DNA of 64,000 nt from sequence record NC_022096.1; one strand, written 5' to 3'. The notes under the pieces are model-generated. The model made no database searches and was not told the DNA's origin. It worked only from the letters and a program-made list of their open reading frames with translations. Both the position numbers and the translations under genes were made by a program. This document shows positions 16,774-43,602 of the stretch, piece by piece (the stretch's first letter is position 1; every line of letters begins with the position of its first letter).

Positions 16774-17607
16774 TTAATCTCCCGATACGCTGATGATTAC
16801 GTCCCCACCGGAATCGTTGCGGCTCTTACGGGGCTTGTAGCCCTTGGCTTCACGTTCCATGTTGCGACCTTCCATCATGCCGTTCACGAGGTCAACCAGG
16901 TCAATGGTCTTCTTCTGCTTACGGCGCGGGAGTTTGTTCTCTTTGAACACCGTGTCGATGGTGGTGATCTGCCCACCTGCCGACTCGTTGGTCATGTTGA
17001 GGTCGTACTCTTCCTCACAACGCAGACGCTTGGTCAGCAACCGAGTCGTGTCAGGATCGACGAGGCGGCTCTTCGCAACCATCTTCTGGCGCAGCTCGTT
17101 GAACTCTTCCACGGTGAAAATGTGGTCTTCGTTCGTGGAGCGAGCGAAAGTGAGGTTGCACTTGCCGTCCTGAGAGGTGAGGCGGATGTACTCACTGCTC
17201 ACCGACATGATCCGCGCGATCATGAAGTTGGACAGGTAGTTGGCACCAGCAGCACCACGGTAGCGTACATAAACCTTCTGGCCGAAGTGGAACCCTGCTT
17301 TTCGAGTTTTCTTCTCGTTATACAAAAGCGAGGCCAACGCACGAAGGCCTTCTTCTGGGACCGCTTGGAATAGGGACACCAGACCGTCGAAAGCATCCCG
17401 CTTCATGAGCGGTTGTAGCGCTTTCGTGTCTGCGATGAAATGCGGGCAGGCTGCCGAGGTTGAAGTCTTGTCGATCTTCGAGCATACCTGCTTGTTATCT
17501 GCGATTAGCTTTTCACACTTGAAGCCAACGCATTCACCACAGCGGGGTTGGAGGCTTTTTAGACTTGCCTTTACCTGCTTGCGTGTGCGTGTTGTCATGT
17601 CCATCAT
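16774..17607 (-). CDS. hypothetical Cys-rich protein
   Basis: CGEC..C..C..C cluster, SH3-like FGQKVYVRY segment, C-terminal GGDVIISVSG. Confidence 0.7.
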   Translation of the reverse strand: MMDMTTRTRKQVKASLKSLQPRCGECVGFKCEKLIADNKQVCSKIDKTSTSAACPHFIADTKALQPLMKRDAFDGLVSLFQAVPEEGLRALASLLYNEKKTRKAGFHFGQKVYVRYRGAAGANYLSNFMIARIMSVSSEYIRLTSQDGKCNLTFARSTNEDHIFTVEEFNELRQKMVAKSRLVDPDTTRLLTKRLRCEEEYDLNMTNESAGGQITTIDTVFKENKLPRRKQKKTIDLVDLVNGMMEGRNMEREAKGYKPRKSRNDSGGDVIISVSGD

Positions 17608-18064
17608 TCAAGTAACCCTTTTTCTTTAGTGTCTCAGCGAGACAGAGGAGCAGAGCTTGGTCCAGATTCCGAAGCCCTGAATCGATCTTGTACAGATGCA
17701 ATGCTTTATGCACCGCGTCTGGGATGCGCGAACTTACCATCCACTCCTTACCAGCAACCGAGTTATCGATGGCCGACAGGATGGAGTTCACGAGGATTTC
17801 CAGATAGGGTTTTGCGTTTAGTTCTTCATTTTCGTTCGCCCAGTAGCGGCGTTTGATGCTCCGTCCAGTTCTCGTCCTTGCCACAATAGCCTCAGCATGA
17901 GCATGAAGCTGGTTGTGGCACTGTGCGCACAGCGGAATCTGCAGGCTATCTTTTCCTCCCAGAGCCTGCGGAACCGTGTGGTGCCAATGGAGCAAGGTGA
18001 AATACTTCGTGCAAATGAAGCAGTTGCCCGAGTCGTACTTCACCAACTTGGCTGTGTTACTCAT
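17534..18064 (-). CDS. HNH endonuclease
   Basis: CFIC....LHWHHTVPQALGG......LCAQCHNQLH. Confidence 0.85.
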   Translation of the reverse strand: MSNTAKLVKYDSGNCFICTKYFTLLHWHHTVPQALGGKDSLQIPLCAQCHNQLHAHAEAIVARTRTGRSIKRRYWANENEELNAKPYLEILVNSILSAIDNSVAGKEWMVSSRIPDAVHKALHLYKIDSGLRNLDQALLLCLAETLKKKGYLNDGHDNTHTQAGKGKSKKPPTPLW

Positions 18065-19064
18065 CTTCGTTGAGGCTAAACGGCAGCCCCCAATCAACCT
18101 CGACCGTTCGCAGTGTCAGGTCGAGGGCTTTGCGCTGTCGCTCGTCCACGATCCACGCCAACCACAGATTTGGGTTGCGTGGGTTGGGGACAAACTTCGT
18201 GCTCGCCAGTGCGTACCGAGTGTGCGATCGGCTGTTCACCTGTTCCAACAACTCGATGATCTTGTCGTTGGCTTCGGTAGCCGCGATTTCGCGCTTCGGC
18301 CCCGAGCGTTTGGCGATCTTGAATCCGCCTTTGACCTTGCGAACGCCGGAGTCGATGCCCAGCTTCTTGTGGTCAAACGCGAAGATGTACTGTTGTTCCA
18401 ACACCAGGTAACCGTCGCCAACGCGAGTCACCTTGAAGCCTGCCCGTTCGAGCTTGGAGGGGTCGATCTGTGCGCCGAGGTCTTTGAACAGCGGCGTGAC
18501 CGGCATCTGGAATGCCAAGAACGGCAGACCCTTCGTCGAATTTGGGAGTTTGGTGTAGAACTTACCGTAGGAAGCCGCCAGGTTCGCAATCGCCTTATCG
18601 GCGTCTGCGTCGGTGCCCATCTTCTTGCTGGTGCGGTGAGAGCGCACTTGAGCGATGTGGGCGTCCAAAGCGGACTTGATGTCGTCGTACGGGAAAGAGT
18701 CCATATAGCTCTGGACAAGTTCGCGCGTAGAGAGCCGATCATCACGGTCAGCGAAGATGGTGTTGTTGGCCAACTCCGTGGTAACGCGCAAGGTGCGAGT
18801 CAGGAGCTTGTTGATGCCAACCGGCACCAGCTCACGGGTTTCTTCGTTTGCACGATAGCCCTTGAGTTGCTGCTCAGCATCTTGTACGTCGGTGATGATG
18901 GAAGTGAGAGCCAAACGTAGCTGGCTCATTTTGATGGTGTTGCCCTGCTTAGTACCTTCGATCAGGTTGTTCAGCAGTGTGGTGGATTTCCACAGATCAA
19001 CGAGTGACCGCGGTAGTTCCGGATTTTCATTGCGCTCCAACTCTGCAATGTAAGAGTCGATCAT
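18057..19064 (-). CDS. hypothetical protein
   Basis: 335-aa ORF. Confidence 0.75.
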   Translation of the reverse strand: MIDSYIAELERNENPELPRSLVDLWKSTTLLNNLIEGTKQGNTIKMSQLRLALTSIITDVQDAEQQLKGYRANEETRELVPVGINKLLTRTLRVTTELANNTIFADRDDRLSTRELVQSYMDSFPYDDIKSALDAHIAQVRSHRTSKKMGTDADADKAIANLAASYGKFYTKLPNSTKGLPFLAFQMPVTPLFKDLGAQIDPSKLERAGFKVTRVGDGYLVLEQQYIFAFDHKKLGIDSGVRKVKGGFKIAKRSGPKREIAATEANDKIIELLEQVNSRSHTRYALASTKFVPNPRNPNLWLAWIVDERQRKALDLTLRTVEVDWGLPFSLNEDE

Positions 19065-19273
19065 GGCATGTCCCCTGTTGCCAGATGTGATAAGGACTTA
19101 AATTATCTAGGCCCTTATCAGGTTGCAGCGCGGGCTTGTCAGAATCCGTGTCCTGACTTCGCTAGACACGCTGGTTAATGCAGAACGCCGACCTGTAAAA
19201 GCATCGACGTTCTGGTATTGGCTAGGTGTGCAAACTTTTTGGTGATCTTCGTCACTGTGTTTACACACTTGCT

Positions 19274-19359
19274 AAACCTCAACTATCAGCGGCACCACTA
19301 TTGCAGACGCTCATCGCTGACGATGCGACATTGTAGCACGTCTACAATAGCAGAGTCAA
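19274..19359 (-). promoter_or_regulatory. sigma70-type promoter with conserved leader (copy E)
   Basis: TTGACT-N18-TACAAT with extended TG; leader ATAGTGGT..TAGTTGAGGTT shared with the copy at 36378. Confidence 0.65.
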
Positions 19360-19388
19360 GCTGGTCAAAAATTGACCAGCTAGCCAAC

Positions 19389-20894
19389 TTACTCGTCGTC
19401 CGCTTCTTCGCTGATGTCATCGGCCTGACGGCCTTTGGTGTTCTCGGCCTTGATCGCCAACTTCAGGAGCTTGTAGCCTTCGCCGGAGCGAACTTGCTTA
19501 CGGCACCATTCGTACAGGCGGAACGGCTTGACCTTGAACTTGGTGCAGCCCTTCTTGATCAGATCGGGCGAACCATCGATCAGTGCCTTGAACTCGATCC
19601 ACGACACGGTCTTGCCTTCGAGCGGACCGGTGAGGAACTTGAGCTTCTTGCGATTGCCGCCGAGCTGCCCAGTGTTCTTGAGGTACTGATAGGCGTCCCA
19701 GACTCGGCAGAAGCCTTTCGCGTTACCATCGGCATCGCTCACGCAGATGCGCAGCGAAATCTCTGCGGCTTGCGGACCGCCGAGCTTGTTCTTGTGCACC
19801 TTGCATTTCAGGTAACGGTACTTGTCAACGCCTTCACCGGTGATGGTGTCTTCTTCCTCGAACTGGCCCTTGGCGTGGGGAACGCTGACCGAGGTCATCT
19901 TGAGGCGGCAGTCAGAGTAGAAACGCAGCGCCTTACCGCCAGGCTCTTGTTCGGTCGGGCCGTACATTGCCATGGGGATGTCACGCAACTGGTTGATGCC
20001 CAGTACGATGATCCGCTTGGAACGCATTGCACCCTTCACGCGCGGCAGGTTTGCAGCGTGCATACGAGCCTGGGCGCCGAGCGACTTGTCACCCTCGTCC
20101 TTATCGTCGGTCTGCTTCGGCACCATTGCCGGGTACGAGTCGACCAGCACGACGGCTTGGGGACTACCGTCGGGCATTTCGATTCGGAACTTGTTGGTCT
20201 TGCGGAAGTATTCCTTGTCGTACACACCGGCGAGTGCTTTCTGGTTCGCTTTGGTGTTCTCGTAGACGCAGTAGAACTTCCCGTTCTCCTGGATTTTGTC
20301 CGGGAGAATCTTTTCGAGCTTGGCGAGGTAGTTGTAGAAGTCCTCGCCGACCGACGGAGCGTAGTAACGAACGCGCGGTTGGATGACCCAGCCTTTGTCG
20401 TCCTTCACGCCGAACACGTTGTCAACGCTCAGACGCTTGCCGTGGTTCATGTAGCGGAAGATGTTCTCGGCGTAGTCGGCCTGGAACGAACCTTCGAAGT
20501 CGTGCAGCGACGCCTTGCCGTGGAACGTGCTGTCGGTTGCGATTGCACCCATGCACGTCGTGGCGAGCGTAGACTTACACGACTGCTCGCCGCCGAAGAA
20601 CGTGTACCAACCACCAGGCAGCAGGCCGCCAGCGAGTGCAACGTCGATGGAAAGCAGGCCAGTGGATAGGCGATCTTCCGATTCGCTAACCGCCATGGAG
20701 GTAAGGCCGAACTTCTTTTCCATGGAATCGATTTCGGCGTCGAGGTGAGCATACGGATCGAACGCAGCTACTGCCGTGTCGCCCTTCTTGCCTTTCTTCG
20801 CGGTACTCACGTCGATTTCGACATCACCGCCCTTGCCTTTGCCGCGCTTGCTCTTTGCGGGAGCGTCGGCTTCGGCCTTTTTCTTCTTTGCCAT
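19389..20894 (-). CDS. recA: RecA-like recombinase
   Basis: YTFFGGEQSCKSTL (variant Walker A), LVDSYPAM, GINQLR, PGGKALRFYSDCRL; start MAKKKK from the GGAG SD. Confidence 0.9.
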   Translation of the reverse strand: MAKKKKAEADAPAKSKRGKGKGGDVEIDVSTAKKGKKGDTAVAAFDPYAHLDAEIDSMEKKFGLTSMAVSESEDRLSTGLLSIDVALAGGLLPGGWYTFFGGEQSCKSTLATTCMGAIATDSTFHGKASLHDFEGSFQADYAENIFRYMNHGKRLSVDNVFGVKDDKGWVIQPRVRYYAPSVGEDFYNYLAKLEKILPDKIQENGKFYCVYENTKANQKALAGVYDKEYFRKTNKFRIEMPDGSPQAVVLVDSYPAMVPKQTDDKDEGDKSLGAQARMHAANLPRVKGAMRSKRIIVLGINQLRDIPMAMYGPTEQEPGGKALRFYSDCRLKMTSVSVPHAKGQFEEEDTITGEGVDKYRYLKCKVHKNKLGGPQAAEISLRICVSDADGNAKGFCRVWDAYQYLKNTGQLGGNRKKLKFLTGPLEGKTVSWIEFKALIDGSPDLIKKGCTKFKVKPFRLYEWCRKQVRSGEGYKLLKLAIKAENTKGRQADDISEEADDE

Positions 20895-20946
20895 GTACGA
20901 ATCTCCGAAACGGGAACGGGTGGCCACATCGGCCACCCGCAGTCAC

Positions 20947-22158
20947 TTACTCGTCGTCATCATCCCAGGCAGATTTCTTGCCCTTGCCGGATTTCTTCGA
21001 CTTCTTGTCCTTGGTGGATTTGTCGGACTTGGACTTCTTGCCCTTGTCAGACTTCTTGGACTTCTTCGGAGCTTCGTCCTCGTCGTCATCAGACGATTTC
21101 TTGGACTTCTTGGCCTTCTTCTTGGGCTTGTCGTCCTCGTCATCATCGTCGTCCGACTTGGACTTGGACTTCTTGCCCTTCTTCTTGGGCTTGTCATCCT
21201 CGTCCTCGTCGTCATCATCGTCGCTGAACGCCGGCTTGGACTTTTTCTTCTTCTTGGGCTTGTCGTCTTCGTCGTCATCGTCATCGGAGAACGCTTTGGA
21301 CTTCTTCTTGCCCTTCTTGCCTTTCTTCGGCTCGTCATCGTCACCGAGACTGTAGCCGTCACCGTCGTCGTCATCGTCCGGAGTATCACCGCCGACGATT
21401 TCCATGCGCTTGAAGTCTTCCAGCGCTTGCTTGGCGTCCATGCGGCCGGTGACATCGAGCAGGGTTTCGTCGAGCTTCCAGACCAGATATGCCTTCTCGT
21501 CGTCGGTGAGCGGAGTGCGCTCGTCCTTGTCGATGGAATACTTGTCGGTACCCGGAGCCTTCGGCTTGAACTTGACACGAATGTCGCAGCCGTACTTCTC
21601 GTGCGTCACGTCGAACGCTTTCTTGGCGCCGGACTTCTTGTCCTTGGCGGTGTTGCCTTCGCCGATCTCTTGGATACGGCTCGCCATGGTGGAAGTGAAG
21701 CGGCAGACGCGCACCGGAGTCCAGGACTTCGAGCGGATGTCCTTGAAGCCGGACTTCTTCTCTTCCTTGGTGTGCTCTGCCTTCTTGCGCGGCTCATCTT
21801 CCTGCAGCTCGCGGATGATGGCGTTGCCCAGGTAGAAGAACTCGTAGCGAGCGCTGCCGTCCTTGCCGTGAGTCAGGTCGCAGTACGGGCACTTGACTTC
21901 TTTGCCCTTCGCGTCTTTGCGCGGCTCGCCTTCGTGGTTCGGGTCGAACGCGATGCAGTAGCGCGGGATGGTGATTTCTTTCTTTTCCTTACCAGCAAGG
22001 ATGCTGATCCAGTGACGCTTCACTGGCAGAATCTTGCCGGGCAGGCAACGAATCTGCGACCACTCGTCAGCCGGAAACTTGTGCAGTTCGATCACTTCAT
22101 CCAGCTTGACCGAATCCTTGTTACCGGTGCGTGGTTGGAGAGTTCCAAATCCACTCAT
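20947..22158 (-). CDS. single-stranded DNA-binding protein (gp32-like) with long K/D-rich tail
   Basis: CPYC, YLGNAIIREL and GCDIRVKF..GTDKYSI core; about 120-aa DDD/KKK tail; next to recA. Confidence 0.7.
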   Translation of the reverse strand: MSGFGTLQPRTGNKDSVKLDEVIELHKFPADEWSQIRCLPGKILPVKRHWISILAGKEKKEITIPRYCIAFDPNHEGEPRKDAKGKEVKCPYCDLTHGKDGSARYEFFYLGNAIIRELQEDEPRKKAEHTKEEKKSGFKDIRSKSWTPVRVCRFTSTMASRIQEIGEGNTAKDKKSGAKKAFDVTHEKYGCDIRVKFKPKAPGTDKYSIDKDERTPLTDDEKAYLVWKLDETLLDVTGRMDAKQALEDFKRMEIVGGDTPDDDDDGDGYSLGDDDEPKKGKKGKKKSKAFSDDDDDEDDKPKKKKKSKPAFSDDDDDEDEDDKPKKKGKKSKSKSDDDDDEDDKPKKKAKKSKKSSDDDEDEAPKKSKKSDKGKKSKSDKSTKDKKSKKSGKGKKSAWDDDDE

Positions 22159-22188
22159 GTTAGATAACTCCTGGGTTGAACACGTTAG

Positions 22189-23205
22189 TTATTGACAGTT
22201 TTCCTCTAGGGTGTGCTGGCGCATCAGTGCCAACTCGTCAGGAGTGAAGAACTCACCGATGTCAAGTGTGAGCCTAGCGACGCCTTCCCTATCTACTTCC
22301 TTGGCAAGCAACTGGACGAGCTGTTGCGACTCAAGCCGCTCGAAGTCCTCATCCATGACGTGACCGTCCGACAACGTAGAGTACAGCGTCCTCTCGTCAT
22401 CCTCGCCGGGCTTTTTCAGAGCGTCCAGAGAGACACTGAAATTAACCTCGGAGCTTTCGCCGACGGCTAGCTTACGCTTCTGCGATTGCGGCACGGTGTA
22501 CGCCACGCCGTATTCGTGATCTGCGCTGCAAGTTTGAGCATTGAGCACCCACCAGTTGATGTACGTGGTGAGCGCACCCTTGGACGAGTCGTACTTATCC
22601 AAGGCGACGACCATTGCTTTCAGGATCGATTGCTTTAGGTCGTGGAAGTCCAACTGTTGACCTTGGTTAGAGGTCATGTGGGACTTCGCTTGCGTGCTTG
22701 AGTGCCGCAAGTAGTTGTCTAGCGTCGCTGAACGGAACGCATAGAACTTTTCCAGGTAAGCCGATGCTTGAGTGACGATGCGGTACATGTCCGCACGCCG
22801 CGTAATGCCAGCACCGACATAAGCCATGTCGTCAACGGCCAGCTTGTTTTCATGGCTGGGGTCGACCATGAATCTTTGGTACGCCTGCAGAAAGCCTTGG
22901 TTGTCATCCAGAAAGCGCTTGATGAAACAATGGATGAACGAGCGTTCGATGCGGCAATCGCGGAACGTCCGAAACTTGAACGCACCGTCCGTGTGGGTGA
23001 GCACGGCGCACAGGTTCTCAACGAGTTCTTCGCGCGGGACCGACGACAGCTTGCGCTTGCGGTTCGTTGCGACGATTGTGAGGACGTGGGACACCTGTGA
23101 GTCAAACACGGAAGAGTACAGCATCAAAGGCTCAAGCGCCTTGTAGAGGAGCATGTCCATGACCTTCTGGATTTGTTCCCCAGTAAGGTTCTTGTCCATG
23201 CTCAT
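22189..23205 (-). CDS. phage RNA polymerase sigma-70-like factor
   Basis: DLKQSILKAMVVALDKYDSSKGALTTYINWWV is sigma region 2.2-2.4; downstream VSLDA...TLYSTLSD resembles region 3. Confidence 0.8.
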   Translation of the reverse strand: MSMDKNLTGEQIQKVMDMLLYKALEPLMLYSSVFDSQVSHVLTIVATNRKRKLSSVPREELVENLCAVLTHTDGAFKFRTFRDCRIERSFIHCFIKRFLDDNQGFLQAYQRFMVDPSHENKLAVDDMAYVGAGITRRADMYRIVTQASAYLEKFYAFRSATLDNYLRHSSTQAKSHMTSNQGQQLDFHDLKQSILKAMVVALDKYDSSKGALTTYINWWVLNAQTCSADHEYGVAYTVPQSQKRKLAVGESSEVNFSVSLDALKKPGEDDERTLYSTLSDGHVMDEDFERLESQQLVQLLAKEVDREGVARLTLDIGEFFTPDELALMRQHTLEENCQ

Positions 23206-23702
23206 TATCCAAGCAACTCCCGCAGTTCTTTCAACGACAGGTCGGCGTACAAGGTATCGTACAGCTTGATGTTCTGGTCAAGCGGAAGCGTTGGTTCGAT
23301 TCGTGGATCGTTACGTCGCTTCGGTGCGCCCTTTGGGGTTGGCAGGACAAACCCACCGCCGTTTCTAGTTTCAATCATCCTCGCGTAGTGATCGAAGTAG
23401 AGCATGACCCGATCGTGGCGTTCGCGCAACTGCACTTCTTCCTTGATCTTCTCGGCCAGCTTCTCTCGAAACTCCTCGACTTGTGCGCCCTTCTCCTGGT
23501 ACTGCCCGAGGAGCTTGATGTTGTTTGCGTTCACCTGTTCGAGGTTCGCGGCGACGCGCTGATTCTCGGCGATCAACGCTCGCGTCTGCTCGTTGGCTTC
23601 GGCCAGAGACGTAGCAATCCGCGCTTGACCCTCCTGCGCAATTTGCAGTTGAATCTGGAGCGCGGCAATCTTGATGTGCGGATTTTCTTGTGTGTCGCTC
23701 AT
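23205..23702 (-). CDS. coiled-coil hypothetical protein
   Basis: Long heptad region; start MSDTQE. Confidence 0.7.
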   Translation of the reverse strand: MSDTQENPHIKIAALQIQLQIAQEGQARIATSLAEANEQTRALIAENQRVAANLEQVNANNIKLLGQYQEKGAQVEEFREKLAEKIKEEVQLRERHDRVMLYFDHYARMIETRNGGGFVLPTPKGAPKRRNDPRIEPTLPLDQNIKLYDTLYADLSLKELRELLG

Positions 23703-23718
23703 GTTCGTGCATCCGTAG

Positions 23719-24375
23719 TTACAGGTTCTGCTCCAGAGCAATCTTGGCAAGCGCGATGATGTGCTTGCAGCAGCCTGGTGCCAGACGAGGGTTGGTGAAG
23801 TTGGGTGCTTCGCCGTTGGAGTAGATCAAGCGACTAGCACCGACCGATGCGTTGGCGTACTCGAAGACGTAGACGAAGTTTTCGCAGGTGCACTGTACCA
23901 GCACCTTGTTGTGTCGATTGACTGGTAGCTTGTCGTCGTCACCCATGCCGATGATGTACGTCTCGTGGACTCGGCGCACGCGATTCTGCCGCCAGACATC
24001 GTAGGTGACCATGTGGCCCATGATCACAGGACGATGCGTCTTGGTAAACTTGCGCTCAATCTTCTTGGCTTCAACGTCAACCGCATTGTTGATGAACAGA
24101 CGCGGAGTGGCACGAATCAGTTGACGCAGCGTCATGCCTTTCTTCGACGCAGCAGTCTCAGGCAGTTGTCGGACAGGCATTGCCTCCAAGCGCTTGAGCC
24201 TGTAAGGCATGCCGGACGCCAGACGTTCTTTCCCGGGCCGCTTCGATTTGAACACGACTGCCTTCTTCGACTTCATGCGCTCTTGCGTCTTCTCCGCGGT
24301 GCGCTTGGCATCGGACTTACGCCCTGAGGTGTTCTTGCGACTTTTGGCAAGCGGCTTGTACGGCTTCTTCGCCAT
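23719..24375 (-). CDS. SWIM zinc-finger protein
   Basis: VQCTCENF....CCKHIIAL (CxC..CxH); basic N-terminus. Confidence 0.75.
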   Translation of the reverse strand: MAKKPYKPLAKSRKNTSGRKSDAKRTAEKTQERMKSKKAVVFKSKRPGKERLASGMPYRLKRLEAMPVRQLPETAASKKGMTLRQLIRATPRLFINNAVDVEAKKIERKFTKTHRPVIMGHMVTYDVWRQNRVRRVHETYIIGMGDDDKLPVNRHNKVLVQCTCENFVYVFEYANASVGASRLIYSNGEAPNFTNPRLAPGCCKHIIALAKIALEQNL

Positions 24376-26995: not shown

Positions 26996-27604
26996 TCAAT
27001 CCAGGTCGTCGAAGTCCTCGAAGTCGTCATCCGACTTCGACTTCTTGTCCGCCTTCTTGGACTTCTTGCCTTCGGCTTTTTCAGCCTTGGCCTTCTTGGC
27101 TTTCTTGTCCTTCTTGGACTCGGCCTTGGCCGACTTGTCGGACTTCTTGCCTTCGGCTTTCTCGGCCTTGGCTTTCTTGTCCTTCTTCACCGGCTTGTCG
27201 GCCTTCTCGGCTTTCTTGGACTTCTTGCTGTCGCCCTTGTCAGCCTTGGCTTTCTTGCCTTCGGCCTTCTCGGCCTTGGCCTTCTTGTCGGACTTCTTGC
27301 CTTCGCCCTTGGCCGGCTTGTCAGCCTTCTCGGCTTTCTTGGACTTCTTGCCCTCGGCTTTCTCGGCCTTGGCTTTCTTGTCCTTCTTGGCCGGCTTGTC
27401 AGCCTTGGCCTTCGCCGGAGCGGCGGCGCCGTCAGCAGTCAGCTTCTCGACGGCCTTGATCTGGGCTTGGGTGCCTTTCAGGCTTTCCTGCGCGGTCTTG
27501 AGCGCTTTCTCCAGGGCAGCAACGGTGCCCTTGGCAGCACGTTCTTCCTTACGCAGGCGGGAAACTTCCTGCTTCTTGTTGATGAGTACGTCGTTCTTGG
27601 CCAT
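26996..27604 (-). CDS. histone H1-like Lys/Ala-rich protein
   Basis: Repeats of KKDKKAKAEKAEGKKS after an N-terminal coiled coil; acidic C-terminus DDDFEDFDDLD. Confidence 0.75.
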   Translation of the reverse strand: MAKNDVLINKKQEVSRLRKEERAAKGTVAALEKALKTAQESLKGTQAQIKAVEKLTADGAAAPAKAKADKPAKKDKKAKAEKAEGKKSKKAEKADKPAKGEGKKSDKKAKAEKAEGKKAKADKGDSKKSKKAEKADKPVKKDKKAKAEKAEGKKSDKSAKAESKKDKKAKKAKAEKAEGKKSKKADKKSKSDDDFEDFDDLD

Positions 27605-28348: not shown

Positions 28349-28933
28349 TTAGTCGTCCAGATCGTCGTCGTCTTCGTCGGCCTTTTTCTTCTTGCCCTTC
28401 TTGGACTTCTTGCCTTCGGCTTTCTCGGCCTTGGCTTTCTTGTCCTTCTTGGACTTCTTGCCTTCACCGCCGGCAGCGGCTTCGTCTTCGGCGCGAACTT
28501 CGATGCGAACATCGTCGCGTTGATACAGCTTCACAGTTTCACCGGAAGCGGTCTGGATGGTCATGATGCCACCCTTGTCTTCGACCAGGCGACCGACAAC
28601 TTCGCGGATGGCGACTTCGCGGAACACGGTCACAGCGGAGACTTCGCCGACGGCGCCGAACACTTCGACGACATCGCTACGGGAGAAGCGGCTGACCACA
28701 GTCTTCTGCGAAGCGCTGGTACGCTTGTGGCGCAGCATGACCGCGTCGGTGCCGTCTTGAACCAGGAAGCCACCGATTTCGACAGCTTGGCGAGCGAACA
28801 CGGTGAACGTGAACATCGCGGACTTGGCCTTGAAGCTGGTCTTGGCGCTGATGTTCTTCAGGCGCTTGGCGATCTTGTCGGTACGGGACAGGCGATTCGC
28901 GGTATTGCGCTTTTTCGTTTTGTCTTTTGCCAT
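28349..28933 (-). CDS. hypothetical beta-rich protein with K-rich/acidic tail
   Basis: Tail SKKDKKAKAEKAEGKKSKK shared with 26996..27604. Confidence 0.75.
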   Translation of the reverse strand: MAKDKTKKRNTANRLSRTDKIAKRLKNISAKTSFKAKSAMFTFTVFARQAVEIGGFLVQDGTDAVMLRHKRTSASQKTVVSRFSRSDVVEVFGAVGEVSAVTVFREVAIREVVGRLVEDKGGIMTIQTASGETVKLYQRDDVRIEVRAEDEAAAGGEGKKSKKDKKAKAEKAEGKKSKKGKKKKADEDDDDLDD

Positions 28934-36071: not shown

Positions 36072-36150
36072 GTTCGATGTTCCTTTATGTTGGTATTCAA
36101 ACTGTGCGCCACATGCACACATCGAGTGGCACCCGAAGATGCCACTGAAT

Positions 36151-36375
36151 CTATGCAGGCTGGGCAATCGTGTCCGCTGCGGCGAGAACCGCGTCTACAA
36201 ACTTTTTGCGTGCCCGTTGTTCAAGCAGGTTTCTCTTGGCGTGGGTGGTGTCCAACTTCTGGAGTTCCTCCAACTTCACCAGTTGTGCCCAAAGAAACGT
36301 GGCTTGTATAGGTCCGAGTTGGCATCGCACACTTCCGTTGGTGCTATCGAACGTCACTGTTACATGCTGCGTCAT
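36151..36375 (-). CDS. hypothetical early protein
   Basis: First ORF after promoter copy B. Confidence 0.65.
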   Translation of the reverse strand: MTQHVTVTFDSTNGSVRCQLGPIQATFLWAQLVKLEELQKLDTTHAKRNLLEQRARKKFVDAVLAAADTIAQPA

Positions 36376-36377
36376 CT

Positions 36378-36465
36378 TAACCTCAACTAAGTCCGTAACC
36401 ACTATCGCTACAGCACATGCTGCTAACGTGATGTCATTATAGCATACCGGCGGTACCCACGTGAA
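36378..36465 (-). promoter_or_regulatory. sigma70-type promoter with conserved leader (copy B)
   Basis: TTCACG-N18-TGcTATAAT, hairpin, then GGTTACGGACTTAGTTGAGGTTA. Confidence 0.75.
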
Positions 36466-36485
36466 GGCGTTTAGTGGTTATGTTT

Positions 36486-37367
36486 TTAGCTCAGGTATTT
36501 GACGTACCGACTTACGGTGCTGCGAATCGCGTTGGCTTCTAATGCTTTACAGATGAAGTGGATCATCTTGGTATCTGGTTTCCCAGGCACCAGCTTCGAC
36601 AACTTGATCGGCATGATGTCTCGATGAATCGTAACCAGACGCCGGATGAGGCGGAACCGTTCGCGTGCTGCCTCGAAGTTTGCGCGTTGGGTCTTGTTGA
36701 GCACTGAGAGGTCAGCGTCCTCGATACGCTTCGACGTAGCCACGAGTTTGACGATAGCCGCAGGGCCGATTGCTTCGACGCCTGGAATGTTGTCCACCTT
36801 GTCACCTTGCATCATCAACATGCACGGGATGCGGCTTGGCTTAACCAGATAGTGCTCAGCGCAATTCTTGCGCGTGATTTCCAGGTAGTCTTTAGTGTCC
36901 TGCTGGTATTTCAGCAGAGTCACCTTGCCCTTGTCGAGAAGCTGGGCCATGTCCTTGTCGTTGCTGACAATCTCGACCTCCATGTCAGCTTCAACACCCA
37001 GGCGAGTCAACGTGCCGATGATGTCATCCGCCTCGACGCCAGCTTTGTGTACCACCTTGATCCCCATTGCGGTCAGCAGATCATACATGGGCTTGCGCTG
37101 CGGTATCAGGCGAGCTTGCTGCTCAGGGTCTTTCTCTCGATTGCCCTTGTATGCCTTGAATATCTTGTGGCGGTGCGTCGGTGCTTTGCGGTCCATGACG
37201 AACGCAATGTGCGTTGGTTGGCGAGCCAACACGACACTCACCACGATGTTGACGACGCCTTTGATTGCGTTGGTGTGGAACCCTTTCGAGGTCACCAGCT
37301 GAGGTACGGCAAAGAAGGCACGCATCAACACGTTCGAGCCGTCGAAGATCAGGAGCTTCTGTTTCAT
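36486..37367 (-). CDS. 5'-3' exonuclease (Pol I N-terminal/FEN family)
   Basis: LLIFDGSN, EADDIIGTL, SNDKDMAQL, GDKVDNIPGV motifs. Confidence 0.92.
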   Translation of the reverse strand: MKQKLLIFDGSNVLMRAFFAVPQLVTSKGFHTNAIKGVVNIVVSVVLARQPTHIAFVMDRKAPTHRHKIFKAYKGNREKDPEQQARLIPQRKPMYDLLTAMGIKVVHKAGVEADDIIGTLTRLGVEADMEVEIVSNDKDMAQLLDKGKVTLLKYQQDTKDYLEITRKNCAEHYLVKPSRIPCMLMMQGDKVDNIPGVEAIGPAAIVKLVATSKRIEDADLSVLNKTQRANFEAARERFRLIRRLVTIHRDIMPIKLSKLVPGKPDTKMIHFICKALEANAIRSTVSRYVKYLS

Positions 37368-37654
37368 TGGATGGTGTACCACTTTGGTATGTACATGCGC
37401 CGACGTGCGTTCGCCTCAATCAGGAAGAAGTCTCCGTCATCGGAGAGCACTTCTATCTCACCGAGAAAAGCTGGAACGCACCGTTGGGATAGGCGGATGT
37501 TGCGGATGGTGTTGTTGTCGCTCTCAGCGATTGCGCGTGCATACTCCACCCAATGCTCAGGTGTTTTGCACGCGAATCCCTCGACAGTGATCACCACTGG
37601 CTGCGGTGGTTGAATTACGACAACCATCAACAGCGCAACCAGAAAGAGTCTCAC
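37364..37654 (-). CDS. small secreted/membrane protein
   Basis: Hydrophobic N-terminus MRLFLVALLMVVVI. Confidence 0.65.
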   Translation of the reverse strand: MRLFLVALLMVVVIQPPQPVVITVEGFACKTPEHWVEYARAIAESDNNTIRNIRLSQRCVPAFLGEIEVLSDDGDFFLIEANARRRMYIPKWYTIQ

Positions 37655-38064
37655 GGCTGAGCCTGCAAGGCACGCTCCCAGAGCAACGTCTGCGGGCCGG
37701 CCTTATCGAAATAGTTGGGAGAGCTGTACATGACCTTGGCGTCCTGTACGAACTCGATCACGAACAGCGTGCCGTTGAGGGTGCGAATAGGCGCATACCC
37801 GAGAACGTCGAGCGGGTGGGTGTTGTTCAGGAAGCGGCAGCGATTGGCCTTTCGGGCATCACGCACGAATTGCACAAACTCTGCGCTCTGGTTGTTGCCG
37901 GCGAGAGCAACGATGGCTTTGGCGTCCACAGAGGCATCACACACGATGGCATCGGGATTACCCGTGTCGGCAAAGGCAGGTATCGGCGTGAAAGACGAAT
38001 CGCCTTTGGGTTGAGTAGCGCAAGCAGCAAGCGCAATGGTAGCAAGCAAAGCCAACTTTTTCAT
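37651..38064 (-). CDS. lipoprotein
   Basis: MKKLALLATIALAAC lipobox. Confidence 0.75.
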   Translation of the reverse strand: MKKLALLATIALAACATQPKGDSSFTPIPAFADTGNPDAIVCDASVDAKAIVALAGNNQSAEFVQFVRDARKANRCRFLNNTHPLDVLGYAPIRTLNGTLFVIEFVQDAKVMYSSPNYFDKAGPQTLLWERALQAQP

Positions 38065-38065
38065 G

Positions 38066-38287
38066 TTATTCCTCGTCCGAATGTTCTGCAATTGTTTGTG
38101 GCGTGATCATGGCCACCTGCACCCAATGAGCGATGACCAGAGTAACGACCAGAGCTGCGCACAGTGCGAGCCTTGGAACCGACGGGTCGGGCGTCTGTTC
38201 AAGCACGCCGAAGATAATCAGTAACGCCATCAGGTACATCATGGCGTAGTAGCGGTGTACGATAAACTTCAGGCTTGGTCGGTTCAT
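38066..38287 (-). CDS. small two-TM membrane protein
   Basis: Two hydrophobic segments. Confidence 0.65.
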   Translation of the reverse strand: MNRPSLKFIVHRYYAMMYLMALLIIFGVLEQTPDPSVPRLALCAALVVTLVIAHWVQVAMITPQTIAEHSDEE

Positions 38288-38300
38288 GTTCGTGTGATGC

Positions 38301-39110
38301 CTAGAGAATGTTCCATATACGATCGTGGATAGACCACAGGGCGAAAGCCTCGGGTTTGGCTTTCTTTCTGTGCCTGTTGATCACTGCTGGGATGTGAGGC
38401 ACGTTGCGTTTCGAGTGAGCGCGTCGCGCCTCTTTGTAGCTATTGTATTCACGGCTCGGCGGGTAGCCATCGAGTTCGATGGTGTACGTCGCCTTGTCCT
38501 TCTTGTCGAGCCGATCCTGTGCGTCGTCATGCAACGTCGTGAAGTAGTTGAGACGGTTGCGGTAGCGACCACGAGTTGCAGCCACGCGAGCCTCGTATTC
38601 CCGCTCCAGCGAATCGAGCTCCTCGATCATCTGCGCGTGCAGGTCAGCCTTCAGGTTGGTCAACGTCTTCGGATCGAGCGCTGCAATGTACTCAGCAAAC
38701 GCCAGATCAAGTTTGCGCTGGTTGGGCTTGCACCAGTGAGCCAGTGCATCAGAGAACGAGCCGACAAACAAGCCGCCTGCAAACTCACCAGACATTCGGA
38801 AGACCCCGACTGCCCACTGGGTGGCTGCGTTCTTGATCGGCAGGTCGAAGCCCTGTGGCGGGGCATTACCGCGGAACAGGGCGAACACCAGGTCGCTGTC
38901 GAACGGCCGCAGCTTGAACACTGGGCTCGGCTTACCGCGCTGCGCAAACACAGCATCTACGCACACGGAAAACGGCTCGTCTAAGCGAAGGTCTTCCCAG
39001 TAGTTGTTTGGCCAGTCAAGCGGAGTTCGCGCCTTGAGGAGAGCACTCTGGCCGAGCCTGTTCAACAGGGCGGAGTGCGTTTGCGCAACCGAGAGAGACT
39101 TGAGTTTCAT
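38301..39110 (-). CDS. hypothetical protein
   Basis: 269-aa ORF. Confidence 0.7.
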   Translation of the reverse strand: MKLKSLSVAQTHSALLNRLGQSALLKARTPLDWPNNYWEDLRLDEPFSVCVDAVFAQRGKPSPVFKLRPFDSDLVFALFRGNAPPQGFDLPIKNAATQWAVGVFRMSGEFAGGLFVGSFSDALAHWCKPNQRKLDLAFAEYIAALDPKTLTNLKADLHAQMIEELDSLEREYEARVAATRGRYRNRLNYFTTLHDDAQDRLDKKDKATYTIELDGYPPSREYNSYKEARRAHSKRNVPHIPAVINRHRKKAKPEAFALWSIHDRIWNIL

Positions 39111-39121
39111 TCGTAACCCTC

Positions 39122-39143
39122 AAAAGGCGACCCGAAGGCCGCC
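39122..39143 (-). terminator. intrinsic terminator
   Basis: GGCGGCC-TTCG-GGTCGCC-TTTT; same stem as at 61377 and 61886. Confidence 0.8.
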
Positions 39144-39153
39144 CAAGCGTATG

Positions 39154-40077
39154 TTAGAAGAGGAGTGTCCAGACGCAGCGCTCGGCGTCATACGTGGCGT
39201 ACTTGTGCCAAACGCCAGCGCCGTCTACGTCTGTCTCTTTTACAGTCCACAAGATCGTGGCGTCGATCATGCCGTGCTCACGTTCGTGGCGAGCCATCAG
39301 GCCGCGCACGCTCTTGACCGCAGTTGTGCGCAGAGGCGTCTTGTCATTGTTCGATCCGAGCACCAGACCGTACACGCGCGTGGCGTCATTCTCTTCCTGC
39401 CACTGCGCCTCTTCCGCATGAATCAACTGCGCCTGTTGTGCGGCCCACTGTTCGATCAGCTTTTTCCGCTGGGTGCGCCACTCCTCATCCAGCTTCTGGA
39501 GTTTGTGGTCACGATGCACGGTCACCGACTTGTTCATCTTTGGTAGCAAGCCCGAAGTCTCTTCGGCCATTTGTTTGCGCACCAGCTTTATCAGGTCAGC
39601 GTGCGAGGCGTTGATGAACTCGTACAGGCAATGGTCCCAGTCGCCCATGAAAACGTGGGCTTGTTCGTTGTTGTTGCTTACGTCAACCACAACCCAGCCG
39701 TACTCATTCATGTTGGTACTGTTGGGATTGACACACATGGTGGGCGCCAATGCAGCGCGCTGGTGAAGTGAGTCACTCCACGGAAACACGGAAGCGGCAC
39801 CACGAAGTTCGCAGTTGCTCGGCATCAGGTAGCGAGTGTGCGACCAGAGCGAACGCCAGAAGGCGTGGACAATGTCGCCGTCGATGTTGTACCAGCGGTC
39901 CCGCGTTGGGAAGCCGATTGGGGTACGCAGGTCGAAAGCCGCCTGCTCTGGTGCTTTCGTACCGTGGTAGCCTGCACGAACCAGATTGCCGTCAGGCAGT
40001 GCGAACACTCCCATCAGCTCGCACAGGCTTTCCGGAGTTTCGTAACCGCTAGTGTCTACAGTCGCACGTTCAGTCAT
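39154..40077 (-). CDS. hypothetical early protein
   Basis: First ORF after promoter copy C. Confidence 0.7.
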   Translation of the reverse strand: MTERATVDTSGYETPESLCELMGVFALPDGNLVRAGYHGTKAPEQAAFDLRTPIGFPTRDRWYNIDGDIVHAFWRSLWSHTRYLMPSNCELRGAASVFPWSDSLHQRAALAPTMCVNPNSTNMNEYGWVVVDVSNNNEQAHVFMGDWDHCLYEFINASHADLIKLVRKQMAEETSGLLPKMNKSVTVHRDHKLQKLDEEWRTQRKKLIEQWAAQQAQLIHAEEAQWQEENDATRVYGLVLGSNNDKTPLRTTAVKSVRGLMARHEREHGMIDATILWTVKETDVDGAGVWHKYATYDAERCVWTLLF

Positions 40078-40080
40078 ATC

Positions 40081-40167
40081 TAACCTCATCTAAGTCCATA
40101 ACCAATATACAATACAAGCATGATGCTTGCCCGTGCTCAGTATAACACACCGGCGGATGAGTGTCGA
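40081..40167 (-). promoter_or_regulatory. sigma70-type promoter with conserved leader (copy C)
   Basis: TCGACA-N17-TATACT (TG-extended), hairpin CAAGCA/TGCTTG, then GGTTATGGACTTAGATGAGGTTA. Confidence 0.75.
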
Positions 40168-40202
40168 TGGAGATAGCGGTTATGTTTATAGCGCAGGTAA
40201 CG

Positions 40203-40231
40203 ACAAACCCCGACACTAGGCCGGGGTTTGT
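40203..40231. terminator. intrinsic terminator
   Basis: ACAAACCCCG / CGGGGTTTGT followed by T-rich tail. Confidence 0.7.
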
Positions 40232-40235
40232 TTGA

Positions 40236-40394
40236 TCACAGTTCGCGCAGTTCGCGCTGGATTTCACGATCAGCAATGCGGCGCTCCGCTCTATGGCAGA
40301 GGGTCTTGAGTTCGCGCCCGTAGCCGATGCTACTGAACGGGCGACGACTCCAGAACTCGCCGGGTTGTTTGCTGCCGTGTTTGGTTCTGCTCAT
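40236..40394 (-). CDS. small basic protein (52 aa), not in the ORF track
   Basis: Own translation MSRTKHGSKQPGEFWSRRPFSSIGYGRELKTLCHRAERRIADREIQRELREL; GGAG SD. Confidence 0.7.
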   Translation of the reverse strand: MSRTKHGSKQPGEFWSRRPFSSIGYGRELKTLCHRAERRIADREIQRELREL

Positions 40395-40421
40395 GGTGGT
40401 TCTCCGAATATGACGGGAATG

Positions 40422-40448
40422 TCATATTCGGATAGTACGGTTGGTCAT
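40422..40448 (-). CDS. putative leader peptide MTNRTIRI
   Basis: Strong AAGGAGGT SD; stop codon lies in the 5' arm of a 12-bp hairpin covering the next SD. Confidence 0.45.
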   Translation of the reverse strand: MTNRTIRI

Positions 40449-40465
40449 AGCGGACCTCCTTGGTG

Positions 40466-40951
40466 TTATATCACGTTGCCGACATCGATGTTCTTCTGCG
40501 ACGCGAAGTCAGCAGGTCGCTTGTACTGTTCCTGCGGAATGTGACGGCCGTCTTCGTCGAGGTAACCCCACTCGTACTCTTTGGGCTTGCGTGGATGAAC
40601 GATGATCGTCCAGACGCCGCCCTTGGGGATACTGATGATGCGATGATAGCGCAGCCGTGCGATGTTGCACCAGCGGAACGCGGTGTGCAGCACCTCGCGA
40701 GTCACAGGCTTTTGACAATCGCAGTCGGGCACAGTGACGACCTGCTCCTCGACATACCAGCCTTTGACAACCATCGACTTGAACCCGTACGGGTGGTTGT
40801 GATGGATGCGAGTGTCGACCATCTTGATGTGGTGCAGCCGCACGCAAAACGGCAGATTCCACTCAGGCGGTACGATGTACCAGCGGTCCATGTAGCGACC
40901 GATGTTACGGTTGCGGTGCAGACCAATCAGTGCTTTGAATTTTTGCAACAT
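40466..40951 (-). CDS. cupin-fold protein
   Basis: VRLHHI....HHNHPYGFKSMVVKGWYVEE...YHRI...VWT cupin motifs. Confidence 0.65.
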   Translation of the reverse strand: MLQKFKALIGLHRNRNIGRYMDRWYIVPPEWNLPFCVRLHHIKMVDTRIHHNHPYGFKSMVVKGWYVEEQVVTVPDCDCQKPVTREVLHTAFRWCNIARLRYHRIISIPKGGVWTIIVHPRKPKEYEWGYLDEDGRHIPQEQYKRPADFASQKNIDVGNVI

Positions 40952-40956
40952 TCTGA

Positions 40957-41475
40957 TCACCCCAGGTAATGCGCTTTGCCGCAGTTGCACGGCTTTGGCG
41001 ACACGGCCTTCTTGACTTCGGTGAACAGCTTGTTGGTGGAAGACACGGAGAAATACGCATCGGTATTCACGCCGTTCTTCTCGCGGTAGCGGCGGTTCAC
41101 ATCCGCGCTGTTGAACATCGCGCCGTACGGCCACGATTGCTGATTCGCCTTTTCCCACATCGGGATGTCGAAGGCTTCCCGCTCGATTGCGCTCAGTTGG
41201 CTGGGTGCAACCTTCTGGTCGACCTTGGCACGGTTGGCTTTCAGCAAGCGGCCGTTGTCGGAGACCATCATCATTGCAGACATTTCGATCTTGCTATTGA
41301 TGATGGTGTACGAAACGCTGTCTCTCGACTCCTTGCGGATTGCAGGAACCTTGAACCAGGTGTCGCCGGTGAATTGGTGCTCAGGAATTTCCGGGCAGTA
41401 CCAGTTACGCATGAACACATACAGGACGGAGTTGAACTCCAAGCCCTGCGGATTGTCGTGTACATAGATCATCAC
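40957..41475 (-). CDS. hypothetical protein
   Basis: 172-aa ORF with GAGGT SD. Confidence 0.7.
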   Translation of the reverse strand: MMIYVHDNPQGLEFNSVLYVFMRNWYCPEIPEHQFTGDTWFKVPAIRKESRDSVSYTIINSKIEMSAMMMVSDNGRLLKANRAKVDQKVAPSQLSAIEREAFDIPMWEKANQQSWPYGAMFNSADVNRRYREKNGVNTDAYFSVSSTNKLFTEVKKAVSPKPCNCGKAHYLG

Positions 41476-41981
41476 GTTACCTCAAATGGGAGGAAGACAG
41501 GCCGACGGCCAGCTCCGATAAAGAGCGCGCACGGGTCCATTGAATAGGAGTAGTGCGCGTAGTTCGTGATGCGTCTAACTTCAAGCACTTCCAAGTGGTC
41601 GTACTCTTTGACGCCGTTGTTGAAACGCAGGCCGTTGTACACCTGGCACGGCTGCACTTCGATCAGATGGTGAGAGTTCAGGCGGACGTGGCGTATCGAG
41701 GTCATGAACGACACGATCTGCCCATTCGACTCCCGCATCCGAAGCGCGTAGGCTTCACTGCCGAACGCGCCTATCTGGATACGCACAGCAATCTCGCCGT
41801 CTGGCCCAAGCACGCGATGGACGTGGTTGTTGGGTTTCGACATAGCGAGTTCGCTGACACGAATCGGTGTGCCATTCGGGCGGAGCACGAAGCATCCGCC
41901 GCAAATGGTGTTCTGACTCAGAGGCATCGGGCGCAGCGATTGCAGGTTTACGCCTTTGTTGAAGCCATTGGTGAGCGGCAT
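41472..41981 (-). CDS. hypothetical protein
   Basis: Start MPLT chosen to avoid overlapping the topoisomerase A gene. Confidence 0.55.
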   Translation of the reverse strand: MPLTNGFNKGVNLQSLRPMPLSQNTICGGCFVLRPNGTPIRVSELAMSKPNNHVHRVLGPDGEIAVRIQIGAFGSEAYALRMRESNGQIVSFMTSIRHVRLNSHHLIEVQPCQVYNGLRFNNGVKEYDHLEVLEVRRITNYAHYSYSMDPCALFIGAGRRPVFLPFEVT

Positions 41982-41985
41982 GATG

Positions 41986-43602
41986 TCAGGCAAACTCCAG
42001 GCCAGACTTGTTCTTGTCAGGGTTCTTGAGGTACGACTTGACGCGAGCTTCGGTGTCACGCGCTGCTCGGGCACCCGGGGCCTTGAGGTCTTTGGCGAGC
42101 TGCTTCAATTCGTCCTTGAGCTCCTTGATCTTCTCCTTGAGCGCGGCCGCTTCCAACTTGGCAAGCTGGCGAACTTTTCGGTCGAGGATGATGATCGCGT
42201 CTTCGACCGGAATCTTCAACGCCTTGGCGAGTGCTGCGTTCGGGTCGTTGCTCACCAAAACTTTCGGCAATGCCTTGAGCAGTTGCTCCATGTTCTCGAC
42301 GGCGAACAGGTAGACCTCGTTGATGTGCAGGTCACGCTCAGCGCGCTTGGTCAGATACTTGATCAGCCGCACTTCCAGCTTGGTGCGATAGTTGATCCAC
42401 TTGGTGAAGAAGTCCACGTAGTTCAGGTACTTGAACTCGTTCGCCTCTTCCGCCTTACGGATCGTGACACCCAGGCGGTAGTTCACGGAGCTGGTGGTTG
42501 CCTTCTCAACGGCTTCCACGATGTCAGCGAAGCGATCCTCGCCGACGTTGCGACCGCACTCGACGATGAACAGGGCGCCGTACGGACCAGAGCCCTTCGA
42601 CTTCTTGCCCTGCTTGGAAAAGGTCTTCTTCACGCCGTTGATGGCGCTCAACTTCTCCAGGGTCTTGTCGATGGTCTTGGTCGACGACAGGCCTGCGGGT
42701 ACGAACGAGCGAATCTGGATCGTGCGGGTTTTGAAGTCCGCATTCATCAGCGGTGCGTACACGATGTTGCCGCGGCCGGTCTTGAGCATTTCGGCGAACT
42801 GGCTGCCGGCAGTGATGTCCTCGCAACCGAACGGGTGCTGAATCTTCAACACCTTGGCGAGTTGCTTGGCGTTGAACTCCTTGCCGTTCAGCATATCGAT
42901 GACGACGCGCGCCACAGACTTGAACGAGAAGCTCGGGTTGCCAGCGCGCACGCCGTACGCAGGTGCAGGCACGTTGCCGTTAAACAGCACGTACGGGAGC
43001 AGCGCAGGCAGGAACAGCGGGATCACGTCGTCGCCGGAGAAGTTGGGGACTTTCGGCACGACTTCCAGGTACTTGGTGTCCAGCAGGAACATGTGCGAGA
43101 ACTTCGACATCCGCGCTTCGGTGTAACGCTGTGCGGCTGCCGGGTTGATCGGAGTACCCCAGTTACCCTGACCATCGACAGCAGGCGGCATGGTGTTCGC
43201 AATCGTCACCATCGCACCGTATGCTGCGGCGTCGCCGTGCGGGTGGTACTTACCGATGGTGTCACCGACAGTACGTGCCGACTTCTTGTAGCCGCTCGAC
43301 GGACGCAACGACAGACCAGCGAGCGACCAGAGCAGCGAACGGTGAACTGGCTTCAACCCGTCACGGATGTCAGGCACAGCACGGTCTTCAACCACGTAGC
43401 TGCCGTAGGTGAACATGGCTTCGGCAGTGTACTGATCGATGGTGGTGGTCTGCACGGTGTTTGCTTTCAACGGAAAGCGGTCTTCGGCATGCAGTACCTT
43501 GCCTTTGCCTTTCTTCACCTTCTTGTTGCTGACTTCAATCTGCACGTCAGCAGCAGCAGCGCCGCGGGTTTTTTCTTTCTTGGTTTTCTTGACCTTGGCC
43601 AT
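41986..43602 (-). CDS. gyrA: type IIA topoisomerase subunit A (GyrA/ParC family) lacking the C-terminal pinwheel
   Basis: RAVPDIRDGLKPVHR, KSARTVGD.IGKYHPHGD, AAQRYTEAR; only 538 aa. Confidence 0.92.
   Translation of the reverse strand: MAKVKKTKKEKTRGAAAADVQIEVSNKKVKKGKGKVLHAEDRFPLKANTVQTTTIDQYTAEAMFTYGSYVVEDRAVPDIRDGLKPVHRSLLWSLAGLSLRPSSGYKKSARTVGDTIGKYHPHGDAAAYGAMVTIANTMPPAVDGQGNWGTPINPAAAQRYTEARMSKFSHMFLLDTKYLEVVPKVPNFSGDDVIPLFLPALLPYVLFNGNVPAPAYGVRAGNPSFSFKSVARVVIDMLNGKEFNAKQLAKVLKIQHPFGCEDITAGSQFAEMLKTGRGNIVYAPLMNADFKTRTIQIRSFVPAGLSSTKTIDKTLEKLSAINGVKKTFSKQGKKSKGSGPYGALFIVECGRNVGEDRFADIVEAVEKATTSSVNYRLGVTIRKAEEANEFKYLNYVDFFTKWINYRTKLEVRLIKYLTKRAERDLHINEVYLFAVENMEQLLKALPKVLVSNDPNAALAKALKIPVEDAIIILDRKVRQLAKLEAAALKEKIKELKDELKQLAKDLKAPGARAARDTEARVKSYLKNPDKNKSGLEFA

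Follow-up and report, generated by a model that had tools for sequence, protein, structure and literature searches.

The window analysed here, 64,000 nucleotides in length, comprises bases 62001-126000 of the genome of the Pseudomonas jumbo phage PaBG (KF147891 / NC_022096; 258,139 bp), with which it agrees at 100 % identity over RecA, and its genes lie for the most part on the minus strand. The subject of this study is a short peptide motif, referred to below as the tag, which recurs in otherwise unrelated proteins encoded in the window and elsewhere in the genome. The carriers inside the window are the RecA/UvsX-like recombinase gp116, the topoisomerase II-A subunit gp146, the four-cysteine protein gp113 and gp157, with the following features (window positions):

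16774..17607, minus strand: gp113, 277 amino acids (aa), four invariant cysteines, putative SH3/Tudor-like barrel from weak fold-search matches
16777..16809, minus strand: motif copy GGDVIISVSGD of gp113, at the extreme C-terminal end after a variable basic linker
19389..20894, minus strand: gp116, RecA/UvsX-like recombinase (Pfam PF00154)
20763..20894, minus strand: lysine-rich N-terminal tail of gp116 with GGDVEIDVST (motif 20805-20825), disordered as judged from sequence and AlphaFold2 (AF2)
41986..43602, minus strand: gp146, topoisomerase II subunit A, GyrA/ParC-like (Pfam PF00521, residues 74-507)
43468..43602, minus strand: lysine-rich N-terminal tail of gp146 with AADVQIEVSN (motif 43528-43548), recognised from sequence
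52325..53446, plus strand: gp157, 373 aa, with the internal motif DTIIDVTGD (52679-52705) in an acidic variable loop, recognised with a position-specific scoring matrix (PSSM) and from orthologues

An original prediction, made from the letters of the window alone, had proposed a common motif DVxIxVS in RecA, topoisomerase II-A and gp113, placed outside the catalytic folds. All three peptides were located where it had put them, on the minus strand, and their placement outside the folds is borne out, as the Pfam domains begin downstream of the tails and AF2 leaves the tails of RecA and gp113 unstructured. In RecA the motif GGDVEIDVSTAKKGKKG stands about 25 residues past the MAKKKK start, given by an ATG that agrees with the RefSeq start (every orthologue begins with MAK), and the RecA core begins near residue 60, downstream of the motif. 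In topoisomerase II-A the motif AAADVQIEVSNKK occupies residues 17-29, ahead of the start of PF00521 at residue 74, and gp113 terminates in GGDVIISVSGD directly before its stop codon. In AF2 models built from deep alignments, the cores of RecA and gp113 are confident; RecA residues 1-52 have a predicted local distance difference test (pLDDT) score of 31-38 and gp113 residues 254-277 one of about 40, below 50, neither segment with predicted secondary structure. Both tails are left undocked on their own cores in these models, as would be expected if the motif needs a partner in trans.

The annotation of gp113 requires some comment. RefSeq gives it an internal start and 210 aa (genome 78774-79406), while the conserved open reading frame has 277 aa; the invariant cysteines C23, C26, C42 and C54, all within the first 60 residues, are cut off in the short annotation. 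Its 'DNA topoisomerase' label in RefSeq and PHROG found no support in Pfam, PDB and fold searches, and the matches obtained by fold search were weak throughout, with SH3/Tudor-like barrels among them.

When the complete 258,139-bp genome was translated in six frames, the pattern DV.I.VS was found to match exactly three times, each time in a real protein, and the three are those named in the original prediction; the mean number expected by chance in the residue-shuffled proteome is 0.087. For the looser pattern [GA]D..I[DES]V[ST], the observed count was reached in 0 of 2000 proteome shuffles, and a chance origin of the motif is excluded. The shuffled proteome was taken from a simple gene caller that dropped topoisomerase A for an open reading frame on the opposite strand, so these counts are conservative. 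An open frame of 596 aa opposite the topoisomerase II-A gene (window 41956-43746, plus strand) is an artefact of composition.

Word searches yielded 370 relatives of RecA, more than 3,700 of topoisomerase A and 46 of gp113, for the most part from metagenomes. Each of the three families has hypervariable tails, differing in length as well as sequence and rich in gaps, yet a small motif island keeps a constant place in them. RecA tails bear VAIDVSGDKP, AVIDVSGD, AVDVSGD or TEIDVSGT, and more distant ones KKLDLSPK or VVDIKTARKKK; topoisomerase A tails bear TKIDVSGD, KIDVSG, KIDVSD, GIDVSS, GVDVSGT or VVIDVTGG, and those of Erwinia and Dickeya phages AVELSSLKKKK, GIEVADIKTG or AVAVDDLPKKKKKK. Nearly all of the 46 gp113 homologues end in I-[D/S/A]-V-S-G-[D/E], immediately before the stop and after a gapped basic linker, and the valine is at least 90 % conserved. 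The string [IV]DVS was observed in 18 of 88 distinct RecA tails (mean of 0.2 in shuffled tails), 8 of 104 distinct topoisomerase A tails (mean 0.2) and 17 of 46 gp113 tails (mean 0.3). The original prediction would have been refuted by a motif missing from orthologues or no commoner than in shuffled disordered sequence; it is present in them, at frequencies far above those of shuffled tails.

The definition of the motif had to be revised, DVxIxVS giving way to a core of the form hydrophobic-[D/E/S]-V-[S/T]-G. The form in PaBG is G-D-x-x-I-x-V-S, and its clade shares the long form G-D-x-x-I-[D/E/S]-V-[S/T]-G-D, of which I-D-V-S-G is the conserved core. As in short linear motifs generally, a run of 3-10 conserved residues lies in a disordered, fast-evolving region and recurs in unrelated proteins. 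The codons of the five best PaBG copies show synonymous differences at every conserved position, serine being encoded by TCG, AGT or AGC (both TCN and AGY) and valine by GTA, GTC, GTG or GTT, which argues that selection acts on the peptide and not on DNA or RNA. A DNA-level repeat, a regulatory element and a recent duplication are ruled out by the same differences between copies; the last gp113 codons alone double as the ribosome-binding site of gp112. Regarding the orthologues themselves, intein domains (PF14890) were seen in several metagenomic sequences (RecA P0094 and P0121, topoisomerase A P0168 and P0211). In phage HRDY3 the topoisomerase II-A gene reads as a pair of neighbouring open frames (315 and 250 aa) whose ends overlap by a few residues; the gene may be split, or a frameshift or an error of sequencing may be the cause.

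The tag is not confined to the three proteins originally named; looser scans brought to light four more, and at least seven PaBG proteins carry it; those encoded outside the window are the HExxH peptidase gp304, gp288 and gp293. A PSSM trained solely on non-PaBG instances from the orthologues of RecA, topoisomerase A and gp113 was run on the six-frame PaBG translation and scored gp113 (25.6), RecA (24.6), gp288 (20.9), gp157 (19.7) and gp304 (15.9) highest, the next match reaching 12.4. As the families of gp288, gp157 and gp304 were outside the training set, these are independent detections. Scores of only 11-12 were obtained for gp224 (VVDVSGTLVA, conserved in the contig G002), gp218 and gp216; these matches lie in large structural proteins and were not counted. 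The string GDVLIAVAGD in gp82 was rejected as a chance match, being unconserved in G001, Lu11 and JA29 and set in what reads as a folded stretch.

For the individual carriers, comparison was made among complete or large genomes, namely PaBG, the IMG/VR contigs G001 and G002, Lu11, HRDY3, NCTB, Dickeya phage JA29 and Erwinia phage Yoloswag. The annotated ATG of gp304 (genome 130572) leaves out the motif KKKKGDVKIDVTVEKKKK, which precedes it. A GTG at genome 130476, which has a good ribosome-binding site and directly follows the gp305 stop, is probably the true start as judged from sequence (gene at genome 130476-131537, plus strand); the 32 residues thus added constitute a lysine-rich tag, and such an N-terminal tail is found in the orthologues of Lu11, HRDY3, NCTB and G001. 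The N-terminal end of gp288 carries KGDRRIDVSGVD, and gp293 carries AADVQISVDG, which is nearly the topoisomerase A version. At the motif site of gp157, relatives have KPIDVSGT (Lu11) and VRDVSGS (HRDY3). Family, PDB and fold searches with gp113, gp288, gp157, gp293 and their neighbours returned, besides the weak gp113 matches, only families of unknown function, no structural labels were found in the annotation of relatives, and the IMG/VR scans contained no relatives of gp304 and gp157. Four of the seven tagged proteins are without any assigned function.

The strongest result is the concerted change of the tag between lineages. Within each genome, the unrelated proteins gp113, gp288 and gp293 share one lineage-specific version of the motif: IDVSGD in the PaBG clade, V-R-G-G-D in Lu11 and HRDY3, IELGDL in NCTB, IELSD in JA29 and AVDLSDL in Yoloswag. 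The copies at the C-terminal end of gp113, the N-terminal end of gp288 and the N-terminal region of gp293 are as follows:

PaBG: gp113 IISVSGD (stop); gp288 RIDVSGV; gp293 QISVDG
G001: gp113 KIDVSGE (stop); gp288 FDVSGD; gp293 KIDVTEG
Lu11: gp113 LTVRGD...; gp288 ISVRGGD; gp293 IEVRGGS
HRDY3: gp113 VRNVREG; gp288 VRTVRGGD; gp293 VREVRDG
NCTB: gp113 DDIELGDL (stop); gp288 EEFELGDL; gp293 DDIELGDI
JA29: gp113 PIELSDY (stop); gp288 AISLDDF; gp293 AIELSDIKTG
Yoloswag: gp113 AVDLSDL (stop); gp288 AISLDDL; gp293 AVDLSDLKG

Topoisomerase A has GIEVADIKTG in JA29 and AVALDTIKKK in Yoloswag. Similarly, the gp304-like, gp157-like and gp107-like proteins of HRDY3, the last a KTSC protein, all have RDVSG where Lu11 has IDVSG. 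For a short peptide that changes in step across unrelated proteins, the simplest explanations would be a common binding site that drifts along with it, or copies that pair mutually.

Taken together, these sequence comparisons favour, with moderate confidence on our part, a short linear docking motif that at least seven PaBG proteins display on flexible tails or loops and that is aimed at one phage-encoded partner. The part of the original prediction that proposed a docking motif common to unrelated proteins is strongly supported by positional conservation, selection at the protein level and concerted change. The motif, of some 6-10 residues, would form a short strand in which every other side chain is hydrophobic, ending in a turn of small or acidic character, and would be presented on flexible, mostly lysine-rich tails or loops. 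In the most likely mechanism, the partner has a groove or the open edge of a sheet with which this strand pairs, and the tagged proteins would be tethered at a common place; the basic tails may in addition bind nonspecifically to DNA or to acidic tails that other phage proteins carry. Motif and shared binding site would then co-evolve lineage by lineage. Both the binding in trans and the identity of the bound partner are what we infer from the comparisons. A host-encoded partner is unlikely, to judge from the sequences, since phages whose hosts are close relatives have markedly different motifs.

Several observations weigh against this explanation. The set of clients is heterogeneous, combining DNA enzymes with proteins of the morphogenesis blocks, so that they do not readily suggest one functional setting. 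Some orthologues no longer have tail or motif, for example RecA P0026-P0032, where the tail is absent altogether, and gp304 of G001; the tag would accordingly be dispensable for at least some clients, and the orthologues without any tail also indicate that it is modular. Lu11 and HRDY3 contain two or more forms, V-R-G-G in gp113, gp288 and gp293 and [I/R]DVSG in gp304 and gp157, which perhaps points to more than one receptor. Finally, kinship among the sequences inflates the [IV]DVS counts given above and overstates their independence; the flanking tail sequence, however, is unconserved.

Among the alternatives, the tag could be a signal for the prohead or capsid, docking to scaffold, portal or inner capsid so that tagged proteins enter the head and are possibly injected with the DNA. 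This fits with the genomic setting of gp288, gp293 and the gp107-like protein of HRDY3 (encoded between portal and terminase), which lie in morphogenesis blocks next to the virion proteins gp295 and gp284, and with gp288 itself, which is highly charged, shows a faint, sub-threshold coiled-coil match and can be read as scaffold-like. The terminal placement of an extended peptide with alternating hydrophobic residues, behind a flexible linker, is likewise as in encapsulin cargo peptides. We nevertheless consider the proposal unlikely. The published set of 14 PaBG virion proteins (PMC7412058) includes no client, although this gel-based list is shallow, and the bona fide virion proteins gp295 and gp284 are without the motif. 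The position is not that of a cleaved N-terminal signal of the T4 type, as the gp113 copy is at the extreme C-terminal end and the gp157 copy is internal. To our knowledge, moreover, no phage packages RecA or a topoisomerase. It would be somewhat less probable still that the tag is a homotypic strand in which copies pair like with like and co-assemble the tagged proteins, perhaps within a polyelectrolyte-rich replication factory. Within a genome, the copies in unrelated proteins are closer to one another than to their orthologous counterparts in other lineages (AVDLSDL is identical in two Yoloswag proteins), as like-with-like pairing would require, and the phage is rich in blocky charged tails; against this, a strand of 5-7 residues with charged residues and dense lysine flanks would be a poor self-associating segment, two distinct forms occur per genome in Lu11 and HRDY3, and a co-evolving receptor explains the concerted change equally well.

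Recognition by a host machine, the tag being a chaperone site or degron (a DnaK-type site or a terminal tag for ClpX or Lon) that times activity or turnover, is very improbable. The terminal position and the hydrophobic core with basic flanks do resemble DnaK and ClpX motifs, yet such chaperones and proteases are highly conserved across Pseudomonas, Erwinia and Dickeya, and the motif shifts sharply between phage lineages; in addition, the conserved acidic residue in the core is disfavoured for DnaK, and the gp157 copy is internal with acidic flanks. That the tag has no function, being a compositional accident or the trace of a signal in DNA or RNA, might be suggested by the low complexity of the tails and by the overlap of the last gp113 codons with the gp112 ribosome-binding site. 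The shuffle controls, the synonymous codon variation, the conservation across orthologues of 40-97 % identity and the concerted change leave this reading practically no probability.

Returning to the docking motif with a phage-encoded partner, the candidates can be ranked loosely, with a prohead component placed below a DNA-transaction platform, that is the core of the single-stranded DNA-binding protein (SSB), the clamp gp279, the RecA core, DnaB or the giant helicase gp284. PaBG encodes the beta-type clamp gp279, clamps being the classic hub for such motifs, and a clamp loader, and the tag resembles clamp-binding motifs (QL[SD]LF, QLxLxL) as a short extended peptide with alternate hydrophobic residues, carried at a protein end or loop by many DNA enzymes. 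It differs from them in having D, G or a variable residue in place of glutamine at position 1, V/I/V anchors and no aromatic residue. The tag is also absent from the termini of Pol I gp281, gp275, LigA gp268, the 5'-3' exonuclease gp137 and the clamp loader gp301, for which the PSSM gave no match either; the absence from DNA polymerase, ligase and flap nuclease weakens the case for the clamp as the hub.

The SSB gp117, whose gene adjoins that of RecA, is a further candidate:

20947..22158, minus strand: gp117, SSB, candidate partner

In phage T4, RecA/UvsX is a classic SSB partner, and the SSB of that phage, gp32, binds the mediator protein and the helicase loader besides UvsX. The PaBG protein has a long charged tail. 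Compared with the hub formed by the SSB C-terminal tip (DDDIPF), however, the polarity is reversed, with the peptide on the PaBG clients instead of on SSB. The C-terminal tail of gp117, 160 residues long (20947-21430, minus strand), alternates poly-Lys and poly-Asp blocks, has one S/A-F/L-S-D element per repeat and ends in W-D-D-D-D-E, an architecture that recurs in Lu11, HRDY3, NCTB and JA29; from its sequence this tail is possibly a multivalent polyampholyte able to form condensates. As for gp284 (genome 148541-154450, plus strand), this helicase of 1969 aa accounts for the largest band in the virion proteome that has been published and is encoded beside the gp288 family in Yoloswag too, and it is possible that it serves as a large scaffold and partner of the tag.

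The RecA core deserves mention in relation to the RecA-NT motif of UmuC/ImuB, in which the segment that joins RecA/Rad51 subunits is copied in a partner protein (PMC11791113). As in RecA-NT and the BRC repeats of BRCA2, a likeness exists, since the tag I-D-V-S-G-D loosely resembles the RecA strand beta-0, M-A-V-S-E-S-E-D. RecA-NT, however, spans about 28 residues including a helix, the PaBG tag being a bare strand of about 8, and RecA is itself a tag carrier; the AF2 monomer moreover leaves the RecA tail free of the RecA core. Mimicry of strand beta-0 was rejected, as tail motif and strand do not co-vary across lineages.

Two other kinds of peptide signal are similar in part. The T4 capsid targeting sequence, the P1 Dar signals and encapsulin cargo peptides are short terminal peptides that address unrelated proteins to one assembly, and encapsulin peptides are extended, sit behind flexible linkers and occur at either end; for the tag, however, proven PaBG virion proteins lack it, the clients include a core recombinase and a topoisomerase, and no protease site is apparent next to it. 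The SUMO-interacting motif of type b, which binds by strand addition, recalls the PaBG-clade core [V/I]-[V/I]-D-V-[S/T] with its acidic residues, as in VAIDVSGD, VVVDVST and IIDVSGE, but it belongs to a eukaryotic system, and Lu11, NCTB and JA29 (VRGGD, IELGDL) do not follow the pattern. In kind, the tag is a short-linear-motif network, and it lacks the defining features, as far as tested, of RecA-NT, the T4 targeting sequence and the clamp motif.

No description of the tag was found in the literature searched, and the paper on PaBG makes no mention of it. Peptide-motif hubs organise replication and repair in cells, as with clamp-binding motifs and SSB tips, and the loading of cargo, as in encapsulins and the heads of T4; a comparable network is not known from the large, poorly understood jumbo-phage group formed by PaBG, Lu11, NCTB and the 'Lupandier' phages of Dickeya and Erwinia. 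The tag would join seven proteins into one interaction set and provide an experimental handle on the members without function, and its lineage-specific versions amount to a natural experiment in specificity. A bolder, rather doubtful extension is that the peptide works as an 'address label' by which one phage-built destination receives the recombinase, a topoisomerase subunit, a metallopeptidase and several proteins of the morphogenesis blocks, label and receptor co-evolving as a private code of each lineage. The destination could then be a replication compartment without a membrane, or the prohead; in the latter case RecA and topoisomerase would be packaged and injected along with the phage DNA. 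If the receptor were a component of either, the tag would be a ready tool for directing foreign proteins there.

The tag adds something specific to what is a general polyelectrolyte theme of this phage. Lysine-rich terminal tails are present on almost every PaBG protein of DNA transactions, including the clamp loader, topoisomerase II-B, primase, RuvC, SbcC, DnaB, ParB, Pol I and the giant helicase, and the phage also encodes histone-like lysine-rich proteins as well as proteins with long acidic runs (SSB, gp82, gp125). Histone-like are gp124 and gp126 (window 26996-27604 and 28349-28933, minus strand), with repeated units of the type GKKSKKAEKADKP and the acidic tips DDFEDFDDLD and DEDDDDLDD. 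Two tRNA-Lys(UUU) genes and one tRNA-Asp gene were found when window 60228-60843 (plus strand) and the whole genome were considered, and this tRNA set may serve the unusual lysine-rich and acidic composition of the PaBG proteins.

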